A program made the position numbers and the translations under genes. The notes beneath the pieces were generated by a model. That model was not told the origin of the DNA, did no database searches, and saw nothing but the letters and a program-made list of their open reading frames with translations. Of a stretch of DNA of 64,000 bases, positions 1,164 to 7,570 are shown one piece after another. Origin of the DNA: Dimorphilus gyrociliatus (lineage: Eukaryota > Animalia > Annelida); contig CAJFCJ010000005.1 of assembly GCA_904063045.1 (NCBI GenBank), forward strand, positions 3,404,165-3,468,164, written 5' to 3'. The first letter of the stretch is position 1; the number at the start of each line of letters is the position of its first letter.

Positions 1164-3654
1164 TTAGCTCATACTGCCAACGTTTACGTATACAGCTTCA
1201 GCTTCGCTTTCATTCGTTACATTTCCATATATAGGTTCCTCTTTGCTAATTTCTCCTTTACCCTCCATTTCTTTGTTAAGGTTTAGTTCTGTCATATCGT
1301 TATTCTTTAATTCTTTGTTTATTTCGTTCAATACCTTTTTTTAATGAAAAGTAATATTATATTTTTTTTATGTAGCAGGCATAGTATTGTTACTATTTAT
1401 CTTTATATTTACATCTTTGTAATTTGGTGGTAAATCGGTTATTTTAAATGCATTATTTACGTATAAACTCTCTACATTTGCATCATTTTCCTCTTCTTTT
1501 CCTTTTTTATCTATTGTACTTATTCCTTCAACGTAAACGTTATCACTAGATAAAGGTAAGAGTGAGAAAATTTTCAATTGTGTTAAAGATTACACGTATT
1601 TAATTACTCCTTACATGCGTGGTCCTTGAAGTTTCTTAGGACTATCGGCAGTAACACCTATACCTGCCATACAACAGTTACACCATCCTTTCTTATAGAA
1701 AAAGATTATCAAGAGAATCAGCAAGATAGTTCCAACTGTTGAGAAGGTTAAAAAGCATGGTTAAACCCTCAATAGTTAAGGTTTTTACTAATTTATTTAC
1801 TTACCTATACAAGATACTATTATACCAGCAAGAACGCCATCTGTATTCTTTTTACTCTTGTCAAGTTTTGCACCAAGCAATGGTTGAAATGATGAAGATT
1901 CGATTGTTTTTTCCGTTGACTGTGTCAAAGAATAGCAAGTATGATTATCGGCACCTAATTTCATATTCAGCGGACAAGAGCAAGAGTAGGAACCATAATC
2001 GTTTTTGCAGGAATGTGAACATCCACCTCTGTTGGTCAATTTACATTCGTTTATATCCAAGCATATACTTCCATTACTTCTCAAACCCTCTTTACATTGA
2101 CAAAAATGCGATCCCGGGGTGTTAAAGCACTCCTCTTGACAGATATTATCAATTTTGCATTCATTAATATCAACGCAATGAGTAGAATTTTGAAGTTCAT
2201 ATCCATTTTTGCATTTACAGTAAAAACTACCTTTCGTATTTTTACATTCAGCATTGCCGCAGATATTCGGGTATTTCTTACACTCGTCTATGTCTAAACA
2301 TTCGAACTTATCTCGAAGTTCATATCCTGATAGGCAGGTACAAGTTGATTTTTTAAAATCGCACGAATGCTGACATTTGTGACATTCGTTCTCTTCTAGA
2401 AGAAAAAACACGTGAATATTAATTAAACTTAGAAATATGCATATAAATGGTATCGTGTATATTAATTATATAAGCAAGCAATAGCATGCTAATGGCGTCA
2501 CTCAGTCATGCAAGACAAACGCGATATAGTCAATTTCCACGACGTTCTCTCATTGGCAGAATCATATAGAGTTGAAGGAGAACGCCGAGTTAAATCGAGG
2601 ACAGTTTACACAACTCATCAATTGCAAATTCTCGAAGAGGAATTTAGTAAATGCCACTATCCTCCCCCAAGGATCATCGAATTATTAGCAATTGAACTGG
2701 ACATACCTCATAAGAAGATTAAGGTTTGGTTTCAAAATAAACGCGCAAGATGTAGACGAAAATTAATTGAAGAACGTAAGAGAAAGGAAAGGGAATCTCT
2801 TGTCTACAAATATATACCGAAATCTGTATATAACTGAATCATGAAGTTCATAGGCCTATCCACAGTTTAGACATGTAAATTTATATGAAATATAAACTCT
2901 TTTAAGAATTAATCACACAAAAAGGAATTCGTGCAAGGTAAATTCTATTTATAGAATTTCGGTTAAGTAATACGTTTACAAAACATGTCTTACCTCTCGA
3001 TTTGTTAATGGGTAAAAAATCTTTTTCTTTAAATATTTAAAGAAAAAGGACGGTCAATTAAAATAAGATTGTTAAATTGTTCTTTGCTACATAATATAGA
3101 TATAGACGAATAAAATGCTACATAGTCTAGCTTTTTATCTTTCGAAGATTAAATAATGAAAAGGAAGAAAATGGAATTACCTATAGTTTTGCAAATTCCG
3201 TTGACGAGTTTATGGCCATTGCAACAATACTTTTCAACTCTTTCAACGTATACACACAATTTTCTTTGTGTTTTGCATTTTGTTTGTCTAAATAACGAAT
3301 TAGATTTAGCTAAAATAAATTGTAAATGTTACATGTATAATTGAATAAACTAACCGATATTTAATGCAATTGTAACCGAATCGTTGTTCATTACCACTAG
3401 ATCTTTTACATCGGACACGAAGAGGAGTACAACAAGGATAATAATAGGGTTGCAAAATGATTTTCGGTTCCCGAATTTTTCGTTGACATACCGCATTATT
3501 ATCACTGTATACGTTTGATTGAAACAATAATTAATCTAATTGTTTGAGGAAATAATTCTCAATTAATAACTTACACTTCTGCTTGTATATCCTCAGCCGA
3601 TATAATATTATTTATAAGGAGAATGGAAAGCAGGAATAAAATTTCTCGAAGCAT
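1164..3654 (-). CDS. Type I membrane protein (~461 aa): signal peptide, EMI-like domain, 4 EGF repeats (3 Ca-binding), TM helix, tyrosine-motif tail
   Basis: Eight exons splice in frame with GT-AG: 3654-3575, 3504-3355, 3287-3181, 3026-2994, 2395-1805, 1735-1615, 1545-1413, 1334-1164 (1386 nt). Signal [20 protein letters not shown]; EMI-like Cys region ending [13 protein letters not shown]; DIDEC/DINEC cbEGF repeats; [27 protein letters not shown]. Confidence 0.85.
2508..2837 (+). CDS. Intronless divergent PRD-class-like (Q50) homeobox protein, 109 aa, nested antisense in intron 4 of the EMI/EGF gene
   Basis: Homeodomain [23 protein letters not shown]...[15 protein letters not shown] keeps L16, F20, Y25, W48, F49, Q50, N51 and R53 in register with no indels. 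TATAAAT at 2442-2448. Confidence 0.85.
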   Translation: MQDKRDIVNFHDVLSLAESYRVEGERRVKSRTVYTTHQLQILEEEFSKCHYPPPRIIELLAIELDIPHKKIKVWFQNKRARCRRKLIEERKRKERESLVYKYIPKSVYN

Positions 3655-4635: not shown

Positions 4636-7570
4636 CTAATGCGGTACAGCTATTAAGTCGGTTACAATCGGCAATATTTCTTCAGTTTTTAGTTTCCAGT
4701 TGTTAACGTCTTTTGATGTCATGCACCATAATTCACCGTGTTTGGGTTCGGCACTAACACACCTTAACATAATTTTTCTAGCATCTTCTTCATTTAAGTG
4801 CATAACGCAAAATTTATAATATGTTGCCCATGAATCACCATTGTCTGGATCTAGTTTAACAGTCCTTTCAAACCATTCTTTAGCTTTAGTCATTTTTCTT
4901 TCGGTCCAAAATAATTTTGAACAGGCTAAGAGAACGTGAGGATCGTGCTCACAACGTTTTAGAGCGTCAACCGACCTTGCTTTCCTTTGTTGTCTCGATT
5001 CCATGAATATAGCTTCAGCATATAATAATCCAGAATTTGGACAGTCTTGTAGGGATTTAGCCAAAAGATTTTCGGCTATAGTATTCGTTGGATTAACTCT
5101 TCTTTCAACTCTTATGGCTTCTAACCATAGGAGATCAATTTTAGGATTTTTTAAACGTGCCTTTTCTAAAATTGATCTTGCTTTTGTTGTGTTCCCCTTC
5201 CGTTCTTCCAATCTGGATAATAGAATCCACAGGGGTATGGCTCTTGGGCATTTAACGGTACCGTTCGTATAGCAGTCTCTAGCTCTGTCGTCGTTGCCCA
5301 TCTTTTCTTCCAATTGACCCCTCATCATCCATAATTTAGCGAAAGTGTTATAGTGACCAAGGGCTTCGTCACATAATTTCACAGCCTCTTGTAAATCACC
5401 TAAACACCATTCTAATTTAACAGATTTCATAAAAACTCTAGCAGTAGGTGCATTAGTCCTAGCTCTTGCTAGCAGCTTTCTTGCCCGAGTGTATTCAGAG
5501 TTTTCGCTCTCCAATTTTACGGCGGCTAACCAAATTTCTTCTGAATTTGGATTAGCCTGGAAGGCATCTGATAAAACTTTCCTGGCAGCAGACACATCAT
5601 CAGCCATCCATTTCGATTTAGCAAACATAAGCCATAGAATTTCAGCTTTCGGACAGCTTTGAGTTGCTCTTACCAACAGCCCCTCTAAACTCTCTCTAGT
5701 TCCATGCTCCCTTTCGAAATATGCTGCTCTCATCCAAATACCCTTTTTGTTAGGAAGTTGACTTAAAGCGTGGGCGTATATTGCTCGTGCTGTTTCAATA
5801 GCACCGTGAGACGTGCATGCCTCCGCATCCTCGATCCATGTGTGTTTCCGGTCCTCGTCGTCAACTCCATTCCCAATTACAGCACTAATAATGGCGTGAC
5901 AAGTTTTAACCGACTGAGATGCTTCACATTCTTCAGCATCCTTAATCCATTGTTCCCTTTTAATTTCAACCATATTAGATTTTAAGGAGACCATTGCTCT
6001 TTCAATAATTTTTTCAACCATACTAAAACTATTATGAGCTTCTTCTAATTTGGCGGCATTTATCCATATTGTTCTATCCGTTGGAATACATTGACGAGCT
6101 TTATTTAACACTTTTCTAGCATTTTCGTAACTTTCTAATCGGGCTAAAGCTAACCACAACTCTACAGATGTTGGACAACACTCTACTGATCTAGTAAGCA
6201 TTATCCGTGCATCTTCTTCATTTTCTAACTCAACAGCGGCTTTCCACAATCGAACAGAATTAGGAACTTGCTCCAATGCCTTTCTAAAGACACGCTTTTT
6301 ACTTCTGGCATCTTTTTCCAACTGAGCGGCCATCATCCAAACCCTTACGGATTGCGGTAAATTTCTAACAGCTTGAGCAACAACAGCTTTAGCCTGATCT
6401 GCTGGCATAAGTCGAGCAGCTTCCAACCAAACATCTTCAGATTTGGGACACTGCTCCGTTCCCTTCATTATTATATTTCTGGCAGTTTGTAATTTTCCTG
6501 TAACTTCTTCTAAACGAGCACTAGCAATCCAGGCAGGCGGGTGTTTTGGATTAGTTTCTCTAACAGATTTTAACAGTAATCTAGCTTTTTTGACATCGCT
6601 TAAATCTCCACTGCCTCCTCCTGCTGGAATCATTGATTGTAAATCGGTAAGATAACCTTTGGGATCAACTACTGTTTGACCGGAGACCGAATCTGACACT
6701 TGAGTTAATTTAATATCCATCAAAGTATTTCTGGCTTCGCCAATTTTCTTCATGTCAATATCACCTGCTGGAGTATTAAAACCGGGAGTCATATCGCCTG
6801 GGAACGGTGTTGCAATGCCGCCATATTTTTGATCTTTTGGATCAATGGTCGTATTTTTATCACCAGCAGATACAGCTCTAGCAAATGCTGAATCTGGTAC
6901 AGGAGTAAATTTTTCGGCCATTGGATTTCTTTGACGTTTATTTCTAGCATCTCCAACTTCTGGTAAATTAAGCCATTGATCATTGCTAACTTCAGCGAGT
7001 CCTCGTTTCAAGTCGGCAAATTGTTGCTGAATTTTTGGACGTTCTTGACGATATTTGAGAATTTCATCTTTTAAACGCTTTTCTCTCCGTTCTTTTCGTC
7101 TTTCGTCCATTCTTTTATCGACTGCCTCATAAATCGCGTCTGCTTCGGCGTCATCCTCTTCATAAGGATCTTTTGCACACAGTGAACCACCATAACCACT
7201 AAACTGAAATTTTATAAGTAATTATTATTTTAAATTTAAACTAAAAGACATACGACAAGCTTACCTCATCATAATTGGAATCATTTAAATCATCATCATC
7301 ATCATCGTCCGTTTTTGCCTTTTTTGAAAGGTGTTTGTCATCCACATCATCAGCATCTCTAGCCGGACCGATATCAGATCGTGTGGTAAATCCAGTTGCA
7401 CTATTTCAAAAAAAGCATTATATTAAAGAAAGATCAATTATGCAAAATGAATAAAACAAAAATTCACTTCTAACGTACCCTCTTCCCAAACCAGGAACAT
7501 AGCCAAGAGGTGCTGATAAGCCCAGAAAAGATTTTTTCTTTCGATTCACAAATGATTGTGATGCCGCCAT
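4636..7570 (-). CDS. PRPF6: Pre-mRNA-processing factor 6 (U5 snRNP 102 kDa, HAT/TPR repeats)
   Basis: Exons 7570-7479, 7400-7265, 7203-4636. N-terminal [27 protein letters not shown], then [28 protein letters not shown] and HAT repeats to EPKHGELWC. Confidence 0.98.

Follow-up and report, generated by a model that had tools for sequence, protein, structure and literature searches.

We consider it quite probable that intron 4 of a minus-strand gene in the window (the whole 64,000-nt stretch of Dimorphilus gyrociliatus DNA that was analysed) houses an independent, single-exon, protein-coding homeobox gene in antisense orientation; the two genes are called host and guest below. This agrees with the initial annotation, which had proposed a complete, divergent, single-exon PRD-like homeobox gene lying antisense inside the host intron. 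The plus-strand ORF of 109 residues, preceded by an in-frame TAA at 2490-2492, indeed carries the in-register Q50 homeodomain that had been claimed for it: the Pfam match to Homeodomain (PF00046) reached 70.9 bits against a cut-off of 22.9 (E 8e-20), with guest residues 29-84 aligned to profile positions 2-57 of 57. With the numbering anchored on W48, which is residue 74 of the protein, Q50, I31, PPP26-28 and H42 were assigned, and both the replacement of R31 by I and the PPP at 26-28, already pointed out in the initial annotation, could be read in the alignment. The hallmark residues W48, F49, N51 and R53 are all present in the alignments, and every DNA-contact residue is intact. Codons 46 and 47 are contiguous, as had been described (AAG GTT, 2721-2726). 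The exact 109-aa sequence is already in NCBI/UniRef, where its 90% cluster holds only two sequences, and the gene is single copy in the 78-Mb genome.

Table 1 Features of the guest and host genes; positions are those of the window, and L021 is a contig of the diverged relative.
Feature	Position	Strand	Details
Guest coding sequence	2508-2837	+	Single exon, 109 aa, stop TGA 2835-2837 (ORF list, Pfam)
Guest homeodomain, positions 1-60 (residues 27-86)	2586-2765	+	From Pfam, PDB alignments and comparison with relatives
Guest homeodomain residues			R5, Y8, L16, F20, Y25, PPP26-28, I31, H42
Guest homeodomain residues, continued			K46, V47, W48, F49, Q50, N51, K52, R53, R55
Octapeptide/eh1-like motif F-H-D-V-L-S-L-A	2535-2558	+	Residues 10-17, 10 residues before homeodomain
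Guest conserved 5' flank (3' end of host intron 4)	2396-2507	+	112 nt upstream of ATG
CACGTG	2409-2414		In guest 5' flank
ATTAATTAAA	2418-2427		In guest 5' flank, conserved
TATATAA (TATA-like box)	2467-2473		Conserved, 34 nt before guest ATG
Conserved block 3' of guest	2914-2958		About 80-120 nt after guest stop
Host exon 1	3654-3575	-	ATG at 3654, hydrophobic signal-peptide-like start; L021 equivalent 2770-2694, same phase 2
Host exon 2	3504-3355	-	Cys-rich; 52% aa identity to L021
Host exon 3	3287-3181	-	Cys-rich, ...CCNGH...C...; 47% aa identity to L021 2386-2280, same phases
Host micro-exon 4	3020-2994	-	27 nt, phase 1 to phase 1
Host intron 4	2396-2993	-	598 nt, GT 2993-2992, AG 2397-2396, phase 1
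Host exon 5	2395-1805	-	Four EGF-type repeats and stalk
Host exon 6	1735-1615	-	Transmembrane segment and Cys cluster; 66% aa identity to L021

An orthologue of the guest (P0002) was found on four Logan contigs of a diverged relative, and the nested arrangement is kept in four assemblies of that relative. The DNA upstream of the guest is conserved between the two lineages: the 5' flank is 83% identical to L021 (z = 15 versus shuffles), compared with z < 2 for host introns 1-3, and 36 of the 41 nt immediately before the ATG are identical. A TATAAAT upstream of the ORF, to which the initial annotation had drawn attention, is present at 2442-2448, but its position is not conserved; the box that both lineages share is the TATATAA closer to the ATG. 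The CAG directly 5' of the ATG is also conserved and, judged by its sequence, might serve as the acceptor site of a leader exon further upstream. One may accordingly ask whether a larger plus-strand gene ends in the 109-aa ORF as its last exon, with one or more upstream exons that are either a non-coding leader or protein-coding and spliced to the conserved CAG; the gene would then be neither intronless nor confined to intron 4. The acceptor-like TCA(C/T)TCAG and the conservation just before the ATG speak for such an exon, as does the very short leader that would result from use of the TATA box at 2467-2473. However, both lineages have kept the in-frame TAA six codons before the ATG, the spacing of the conserved TATATAA suits a promoter, and the public protein is annotated with exactly these 109 residues; further upstream, in the region of host exon 5, no conserved plus-strand coding potential was found. 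We therefore regard an additional upstream exon as improbable.

Downstream of the guest, the block at 2914-2958 gave a local alignment score of 25.5, compared with 13.6 +/- 2.3 (maximum 22.5) in 500 shuffles, and contains an 8-9 bp A/T-rich palindrome at 2940-2959. From its position and conservation, this block may be a 3' UTR element of the guest or a host intronic element near micro-exon 4. Both lineages have a predicted hairpin at the palindrome on the host strand; because its fold energy is significant only on the minus strand of the window and not in the relative, we make no claim of RNA structure. An Rfam search of 2300-3300 gave no match. Canonical AATAAA or ATTAAA signals are absent between the guest stop and host exon 4, and the first one is an ATTAAA near 3056; the 3' end of the guest may therefore run over host micro-exon 4. 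We infer from the sequence that the guest is transcribed, where it would start and be polyadenylated, and that the host is spliced across the interval.

The host is a fast-evolving gene that combines a signal peptide, Cys-rich segments, EGF repeats and a transmembrane segment. Its exons were read from the sequence and then checked against L021. The host protein is about 50-56% identical to that of the relative, and host introns 1-3 are unalignable. Exon 5, with Pfam matches to EGF_CA (8e-21), cEGF and FXa_inhibition, has 56% amino-acid identity to L021, a dN of 0.32-0.36 and saturated synonymous sites. The EMI domain (PF07546) of the EMI/EGF label given to the host in the initial annotation gave no Pfam match in exons 2 and 3, each scanned separately, in both lineages. 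Introns 1-5 measure 70, 67, 160, 598 and 69 nt. The exceptional length of intron 4 stands as first described; the stated range of 67-154 nt for the remainder does not, since intron 3 is 160 nt when exon 4 is taken as the conserved 27-nt version. This micro-exon matches L021 1975-1949 at 20 of 27 positions, and its length, phase and AG/GT sites are unchanged there. The guest ORF occupies 330 of the 598 nt of intron 4 (55%), in line with the earlier statement that it fills over half of the intron. It is likewise present in the orthologous intron of the relative, where the initial annotation had proposed to look for it (654 nt, L021 1948-1295), flanked by host exons in the same order, strand and phases. 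Because the exon order, the phases and the 27-nt micro-exon are conserved around the guest, the nesting is, by sequence comparison, older than the split of the two lineages.

If exons 1-4 and the EGF/transmembrane exons were instead two minus-strand genes, the homeobox gene would lie in a spacer and would not be nested at all. Read-through past the exon 4 donor stops after about 30 codons, so that a short secreted product is conceivable, and exons 2-3 alone have no Pfam match. This division of the host is nevertheless very improbable. Exon 5 has no signal peptide and no plausible start of its own; its first in-frame Met lies deep in the fourth EGF repeat, which makes it dependent on the upstream exons. 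Moreover, the end of exon 4 and the start of exon 5 are both in phase 1 in both lineages, and the micro-exon and its AG/GT sites are conserved amid non-conserved intron DNA.

The guest protein and its orthologue are identical at 103 of 109 residues (94%), with start, stop, length and frame kept. Of the 46 nucleotide differences between the two coding sequences, 33 fall at third positions, giving a dN of 0.0375, a dS of 0.91 (about 0.9) and a dN/dS of about 0.04. The comparison is with a relative whose neutral sites are saturated, and the guest ORF is, on these substitution patterns, a functional gene under strong purifying selection and not a dead copy. The dN of the guest is about ten times below that of the host. 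That the ORF should be a retrocopy, dead or dying, which is open by chance and has no function, is hardly credible: its intronless coding sequence, its divergent homeodomain (50-58 bits to PRD structures versus 80-97 for canonical paralogues) and its two-member cluster would fit, but this reading is already contradicted by the selection data, with a dN/dS far from the value of about 1 expected of a dead retrocopy and 94% identity next to unalignable introns and a host protein that is about 50-56% identical, and by the conserved start, stop, length and 5' flank and the intact DNA-contact residues.

The retro-derived origin that had been suggested for the guest is unsupported by the sequences compared here. 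PRD-class homeoboxes typically, though not universally, have an intron between codons 46 and 47. In the three canonical PRD genes of this genome that are closest to the guest (L002, L003 and L004; aristaless/Alx/CRX-like), codons 46 and 47 are also uninterrupted, and the missing intron is therefore not diagnostic here. Like processed retrogenes, the guest has an intronless coding sequence inside the intron of another gene. Unlike them, it has no parent: no parent paralogue was found in the 78-Mb genome, where the nearest homeodomains are 39-47% identical and the best other match, at 45% identity, covers the homeodomain only. Nor is any poly(A) remnant or target-site duplication common to the two lineages; the window has no A-run after the stop, and L021 has an A10 run without a counterpart in the window. 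Such absent traces are weak evidence, as old insertions would have lost these marks. The D. gyrociliatus genome is known for intron loss (PMC7854359), and the lack of the 46/47 intron would be due to ordinary absence or loss of introns and not to retroposition.

With respect to its family, the guest belongs to the PRD class: it is closest to PRD-class homeodomains and has Y25-P26 and, at position 50, where the class carries Q, K or S, a Q. Its best matches among solved structures are of this class (DUX4, Pax6, Alx4, CRX, Otx2). The best single-homeodomain matches are Pax6, Alx4, CRX, Otx2, Al and Phox2b, outranked by an engineered tandem-engrailed chain and DUX4 on summed two-domain scores. 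Structure neighbours in the Atlas were generic homeodomain neighbours only (Otx, Rx, Gsb, Alx3, Shox). A word-index protein search with the guest ORF returned no match beyond itself, and a search of 1.8 billion cluster representatives yielded no orthologue with more than 52% identity. The latter, exhaustive search was dominated by multi-homeodomain proteins, and after re-ranking by single-domain score only a Nematostella protein (P0110, 'otx5-A X2') and a Lineus protein (P0120) stood out. The Nematostella protein, best overall by virtue of its flanks, was rejected as an orthologue, having the canonical R31, Q46, R52 and K55. Lopx, proposed for comparison in the initial annotation, was also discarded, as Lopx homeodomains (R-E-R-F/L-S-Y-T..., K-I-W-F-Q-N-R-R-R-K) are quite different from that of the guest.

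The PRD norm is R31, Q46, R52 and K55. The guest, Lineus P0120, a Saccoglossus protein (P0153) and amphioxus Aprd5 have in common K46, K52, R55, a hydrophobic residue 31 and H/Y11, and the Y8 of the guest also occurs in molluscan PRD-VI sequences. PRD-VI/Aprd5 is recognised by the helix string WFQNKRAR together with K46 and a residue other than Arg at 31; the guest has all of these, with I31. The same WFQNKRAR is carried by P0120 and P0153, as well as by Bf Aprd5, Lg PRD-VI and Cg PRD3 (supplementary file 12, PMC6118893); amphioxus Aprd5 has been assigned to clade PRD-VI (PMC6118893). Octapeptide-like motifs lie upstream of the homeodomain in the guest, P0120 and P0153, and that of the guest aligns with the Lineus sequence (VNF)HSIADLV and is similar to HSIESIL in the Aprd5-like protein of Saccoglossus. 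The PRD-VI motif SPQQVRS (Paps et al. 2015, PMC5322547) is absent from the guest, which has T-T-H-Q-L-Q-I at the matching place. When Lineus P0120 was searched against the genome, the guest was the best match by a small margin (60.9 versus 53.9 bits). In a maximum-likelihood homeodomain tree of a set without the amphioxus and molluscan sequences, the guest pair fell in a polytomy with P0120 and P0153 as the nearest rows by path, and an AU test on that set did not reject a clade of guest, P0120 and P0153 (delta lnL 1.14, p 0.41). Taken together, these signatures are a weak indication of membership in PRD clade VI/Aprd5. The description of the guest as lineage-specific holds insofar as no orthologue exceeds 52% identity, but is qualified by its weak links to PRD-VI/Aprd5 genes of a nemertean, a hemichordate and amphioxus.

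The eh1/octapeptide Groucho-binding motif is a heptad of the F/H-S-I-x-x-I-L type, N-terminal to the homeodomain. H-D-V-L-S-L-A of the guest keeps positions 1, 3 and 6 of this heptad and deviates at 2 (D) and 7 (A), and FHDVLSLA as a whole is unchanged in the relative. We infer from these residues that it is a candidate Groucho binder. Under the nested, independent-gene reading that we prefer, the guest is predicted to be transcribed from its own compact TATA promoter within the intron. Its product would be a small protein of the nucleus, binding TAAT-core sites via the standard recognition helix (W48, F49, Q50, N51, R53) and probably acting as a repressor through this putative motif. Its most likely place would be in the non-canonical PRD clade VI/Aprd5, as a miniaturised member that has diverged fast, and host intron 4 would be long because it houses the guest and its control DNA.

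We compared the guest with the PRD-VI/Aprd5 set of amphioxus Aprd5, Lottia PRD-VI and Crassostrea PRD3 (PMC5322547, PMC6118893), to which Lineus 'vent1-like' XP_064629345 (P0120) and Saccoglossus 'aprd5-like' (P0153) probably also belong. The guest resembles this set in having K46, K52 and R55 (not Q46, R52 and K55), a hydrophobic residue 31, H11 and, as in the molluscan members, Y8, and its 12-residue recognition-helix string is identical to that of amphioxus Aprd5. In contrast, it has 109 residues versus 367-451, a linker cut to about 10 residues, C56 versus W56, PPP26-28, H42 and no SPQQVRS; the homeodomain identity is only 43-52%, and the grouping is unsupported in the tree. With canonical PRD Q50 genes (aristaless/Alx/Arx, Rx, Prrx, Pax octapeptide) it has in common the homeodomain fold, Y25-P26, Q50 and the eh1/octapeptide-plus-homeodomain layout. 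Unlike these genes, it lacks an OAR or paired domain, has I31/H42 in place of the R31/E42 pair, and scores 50-58 bits where the genome's own canonical genes score 80-97. As in other animal nested genes, a small single-exon guest occupies a single enlarged intron of a host to which it is unrelated, and the nesting is kept in a relative; among such genes it is antisense, takes up 55% of a very small (598-nt) intron and has a dN about tenfold below that of its host.

The host and guest are a genuine but fairly ordinary nested-gene pair. They nevertheless provide a clean, well-constrained case of a nested gene evolving far more slowly than its host, in a genome that serves as a model for the study of 'conservative' compaction. 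The guest is also a candidate annelid addition to the poorly understood non-canonical PRD clades. The PRD-VI set of Barton-Owen et al. 2018 (PMC6118893) has no annelid member, and these authors put forward the idea that some non-canonical PRD clades date to the bilaterian ancestor; if the PRD-VI membership of the guest is true, it would support such an age for some of these clades. A broader proposal joins two claims: that the guest is the first recognised annelid member of PRD-VI/Aprd5 (nemertean, hemichordate, amphioxus, molluscs), shrunk to a 109-residue octapeptide-plus-homeodomain repressor, and that it exemplifies a systematic pattern in this compacted genome, with small single-exon homeobox genes and their control DNA surviving inside, and accounting for, the few enlarged introns. 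We hold this combination to be possible but doubtful. Long ATAC-marked introns were reported by Martín-Durán et al. 2020, and nested homeobox genes suggest a testable explanation for them.

The 109-residue homeobox ORF (the guest) in this AT-rich animal DNA is a real, functional, nested and divergent gene. An in-frame TAA at 2490-2492 precedes its ATG, and residues 29-84 match the Pfam Homeodomain (E 8e-20, 70.9 bits against a cut-off of 22.9 bits). With the numbering anchored on W48 (residue 74), the homeodomain carries R5, Y8, L16, F20, Y25, P26-P27-P28, I31, H42, K46, V47, W48, F49, Q50, N51, K52, R53 and R55; codons 46/47 (AAG GTT, 2721-2726) are contiguous. The initial annotation was right in all checkable details of the ORF, among them its strand and length, the Q50 homeodomain, PPP at 26-28, I31 and the contiguous 46/47. 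The best single-homeodomain matches among solved structures are PRD-class (Pax6, Alx4, CRX, Otx2, aristaless and Phox2b); an engineered tandem-engrailed chain and DUX4 outrank them on summed two-domain scores. The exact protein is already in NCBI/UniRef.

Features of the guest, the surrounding host gene and a second homeobox locus
Feature	Position	Strand	Description	Host aa identity to relative (L021)
Guest ORF	2508 (ATG) to 2835-2837 (TGA)	+	109 aa, from ORF reading of the window	
Host exon 1	3654-3575	-	ATG and hydrophobic leader; ends phase 2	
Host exon 2	3504-3355	-		52%
Host exon 3	3287-3181	-	Ends phase 1	47%
Host exon 4	3020-2994	-	27-nt micro-exon, phase 1	
Host exon 5	2395-1805	-	Four EGF-type repeats (Pfam EGF_CA 8e-21, cEGF, FXa_inhibition)	51-56%
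Host exon 6	1735-1615	-	Transmembrane segment	66%
CACGTG	2409-2414		5' flank of guest; imperfect in relative	
ATTAATTAAA	2418-2427		5' flank of guest; holds Q50-homeodomain core TAATTA	
TATATAA box	2467-2473		5' flank of guest; 34 nt before ATG	
Conserved block	2914-2958		3' flank of guest; local score 25.5 vs shuffles 13.6 +/- 2.3	
C18 homeobox matches	571.7, 579.0, 588.5, 593.1, 607.8, 626.6, 631.0 kb		Some with stop codons in six-frame read	

A diverged relative also carries the guest. The 90% cluster of the guest protein has one other member, whose ORF is the same on four Logan contigs, L021-L024 (runs SRR23372216, 228, 229 and 232); these contigs retain introns and spacers and so appear to be genomic. 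The two proteins are identical at 103/109 residues (94%). At the DNA level the ORFs are 86% identical, and 33 of the 46 differences over 330 nt fall at third codon positions, giving dN 0.0375, dS 0.91 and a ratio of ~0.04 (Nei-Gojobori). In global alignments of non-coding DNA against shuffled controls, host introns 1, 2 and 3 were at background (z -1.5, 1.8 and -0.2), and neutral DNA is therefore saturated between the lineages. The dN/dS check suggested by the initial annotation thus gave a value not near 1, and a dead retrocopy is excluded by this ratio and by a protein 94% identical amid saturated neutral DNA. For host exon 5, where synonymous changes have reached saturation, dN is 0.32-0.36; judged by these dN values, the guest protein changes about tenfold more slowly than that of its host. 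The host, a signal-peptide/Cys-rich/EGF/TM protein (1805-3654, minus strand), is itself fast-evolving, with 47-56% amino-acid identity in its extracellular exons. We also observed that synonymous divergence of the guest (pS 0.53) is clearly below that of the host (pS 0.76-0.89).

The nesting is conserved as well. Guided by L021, we read the host exons on the minus strand, with additional tail exons beyond exon 6; translated, they match L021 in the same order, on the strand opposite to the guest and with all intron phases equal. The guest of L021 (1421-1750) lies within the equivalent intron 4 (1948-1295, 654 nt), as the initial annotation had proposed to check. Host introns 1-5 measure 70, 67, 160, 598 and 69 nt, which bears out intron 4 (2396-2993) as the size outlier; the other introns are short as described, but intron 3 is 160 nt rather than 154 nt, because exon 4, in the form kept by the relative, spans 27 nt. 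This micro-exon is identical to L021 1975-1949 at 20/27 positions; it encodes D-F-L-P-I-N-K-S-R (D-L-L-P-I-N-D-T-G in the relative) and keeps its length, its phase and its AG and GT splice sites. Joining exon 3 straight to exon 5 would also preserve the frame in each lineage, and micro-exon 4 (2994-3020) could therefore be alternatively spliced; on this exon reading the homeobox ORF is inside a host intron with or without exon 4. An EMI domain, also claimed for the host, was unconfirmed, as exons 2 and 3, scanned separately, gave no Pfam match in either lineage. Elsewhere in the window, a single 824-aa open frame (4636-7110, minus strand) accounts for the greater part of a PRP6/PRP1-type splicing factor with TPR/HAT repeats; its PRP1_N match begins at profile position 87, and at least one more 5' exon is therefore expected upstream. 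The window opens with an extended low-complexity stretch rich in (CT)n/(TC)n (positions 1-230).

The guest ATG lies 112 nt from the host acceptor; this stretch shows 83% identity to L021 (z 15), and the sequence immediately 5' of the ATG is identical at 36/41 positions. The TATAAAT noted initially (2442-2448) is present, but the relative does not keep it at that position. The flank doubles in part as the host polypyrimidine and branch region. Nothing similar is conserved in the remaining host introns, so the flank is more likely to be a promoter and leader of the guest. An upstream ATG at 2486, kept in the relative, opens a 27-codon out-of-frame ORF (2486-2566, plus strand) overlapping the guest start, and would be relevant only if transcription begins 5' of the conserved TATATAA box. 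The 156-nt downstream flank, taken whole, is not conserved (z 1.4). Its conserved block carries an 8-9 bp A/T-rich palindrome (2940-2959) that is predicted to form a hairpin on the host strand of the window and of the relative, with significant energy only in the window; Rfam gave no match around the guest. The block could be a 3' UTR or end-processing element of the guest, or a host intronic element beside the micro-exon. No AATAAA or ATTAAA occurs from the guest stop to host exon 4. The first, an ATTAAA, comes near 3056, and transcription of the guest may therefore run through the micro-exon. Taken together, these comparisons show a coding gene that is conserved along with its upstream region and is nested antisense in a host intron which is conserved too.

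Within the 78-Mb, 349-contig genome assembly the guest is single copy, and the nearest homeodomains are 39-47% identical. A word-index protein search returned no relative of similar length, and when 1.84 billion cluster representatives were searched exhaustively, 6095 homeodomain proteins matched, none above ~52% identity. Re-ranked by single-domain score, a Lineus longissimus 'vent1-like' protein (XP_064629345; 52% over 60 aa) and a Nematostella 'otx5-A X2' protein (44% over 82 aa) stand out, and the guest is the best match in this genome for both, by small margins. For the Lineus protein, the word search gave a single relative, Saccoglossus 'aprd5-like'. A published PRD alignment (Barton-Owen et al. 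2018, PMC6118893, supplementary files 4 and 12) places amphioxus Aprd5 in PRD clade VI, alongside Lottia PRD-VI and Crassostrea PRD3, and all three homeodomains carry WFQNKRAR. The guest is identical to Aprd5 over the full 12-residue recognition-helix string, shares K46, K52, R55, a hydrophobic residue at 31 and H/Y11 with Aprd5 and the Lineus and Saccoglossus proteins, and has Y8 in common with molluscan PRD-VI sequences. N-terminal to the homeodomain, the Lineus and Saccoglossus proteins have an octapeptide/eh1-like motif, (VNF)HSIADLV and HSIESIL respectively; the guest reads (VNF)HDVLSLA there (residues 8-17), and the relative keeps it unchanged. On the other hand, a maximum-likelihood tree of 63 homeodomains left the guest pair unplaced, and the SPQQVRS motif (Paps et al.) is absent from the guest; in a smaller tree the Lineus and Saccoglossus proteins are nearest by path, and a single clade is not rejected by an AU test (p 0.41). 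PRD clade VI/Aprd5 is thus taken as the closest known group, of which the guest is a plausible candidate member. 'Lineage-specific' fits the lack of any relative above ~52% identity, but in view of this likeness the guest is probably not wholly so. Lopx, suggested initially, does not fit the guest when compared with the PRD alignment of PMC6118893 and was rejected. The searches also returned a 383-aa two-homeodomain protein (WP_257266176.1) from a 3.1-kb contig filed under Endozoicomonas sp. ONNA2; this most probably reflects DNA of the animal host within a symbiont assembly and not a bacterial homeobox gene.

Lack of introns is the sole evidence for the proposed retro-derived origin. We found no parent gene in the 78-Mb genome, no A-run common to both lineages and no duplication flanking the guest unit. 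The three nearest paralogues, which are canonical PRD (80-97 bits to aristaless, Alx4 and CRX), all have homeoboxes uninterrupted across 46/47, and intron loss has been reported for the D. gyrociliatus genome (PMC7854359). Simple absence or loss of the 46/47 intron would fit the data as well as retroposition does. Two of these paralogues (G000:C3:1626329-1626520 and G000:C1:218280-218465) are aristaless/Alx-like and sit on different contigs; their homeodomains are almost identical, and the tree joins them as a starred pair. Elsewhere in the genome, ~60 kb of one strand (G000:C18:571700-632679) carries at least seven homeobox matches, probably a compact Hox cluster.

Most likely, a compact TATA promoter drives the guest, and its product would bind TAAT-core DNA via the intact recognition helix, in a homeodomain where I31-H42 stands in for the usual R31-E42 pair. 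The product would probably repress its targets by recruiting Groucho/TLE via the degenerate octapeptide. Between host and guest of an antisense nested pair, interference or co-regulation is possible in principle.
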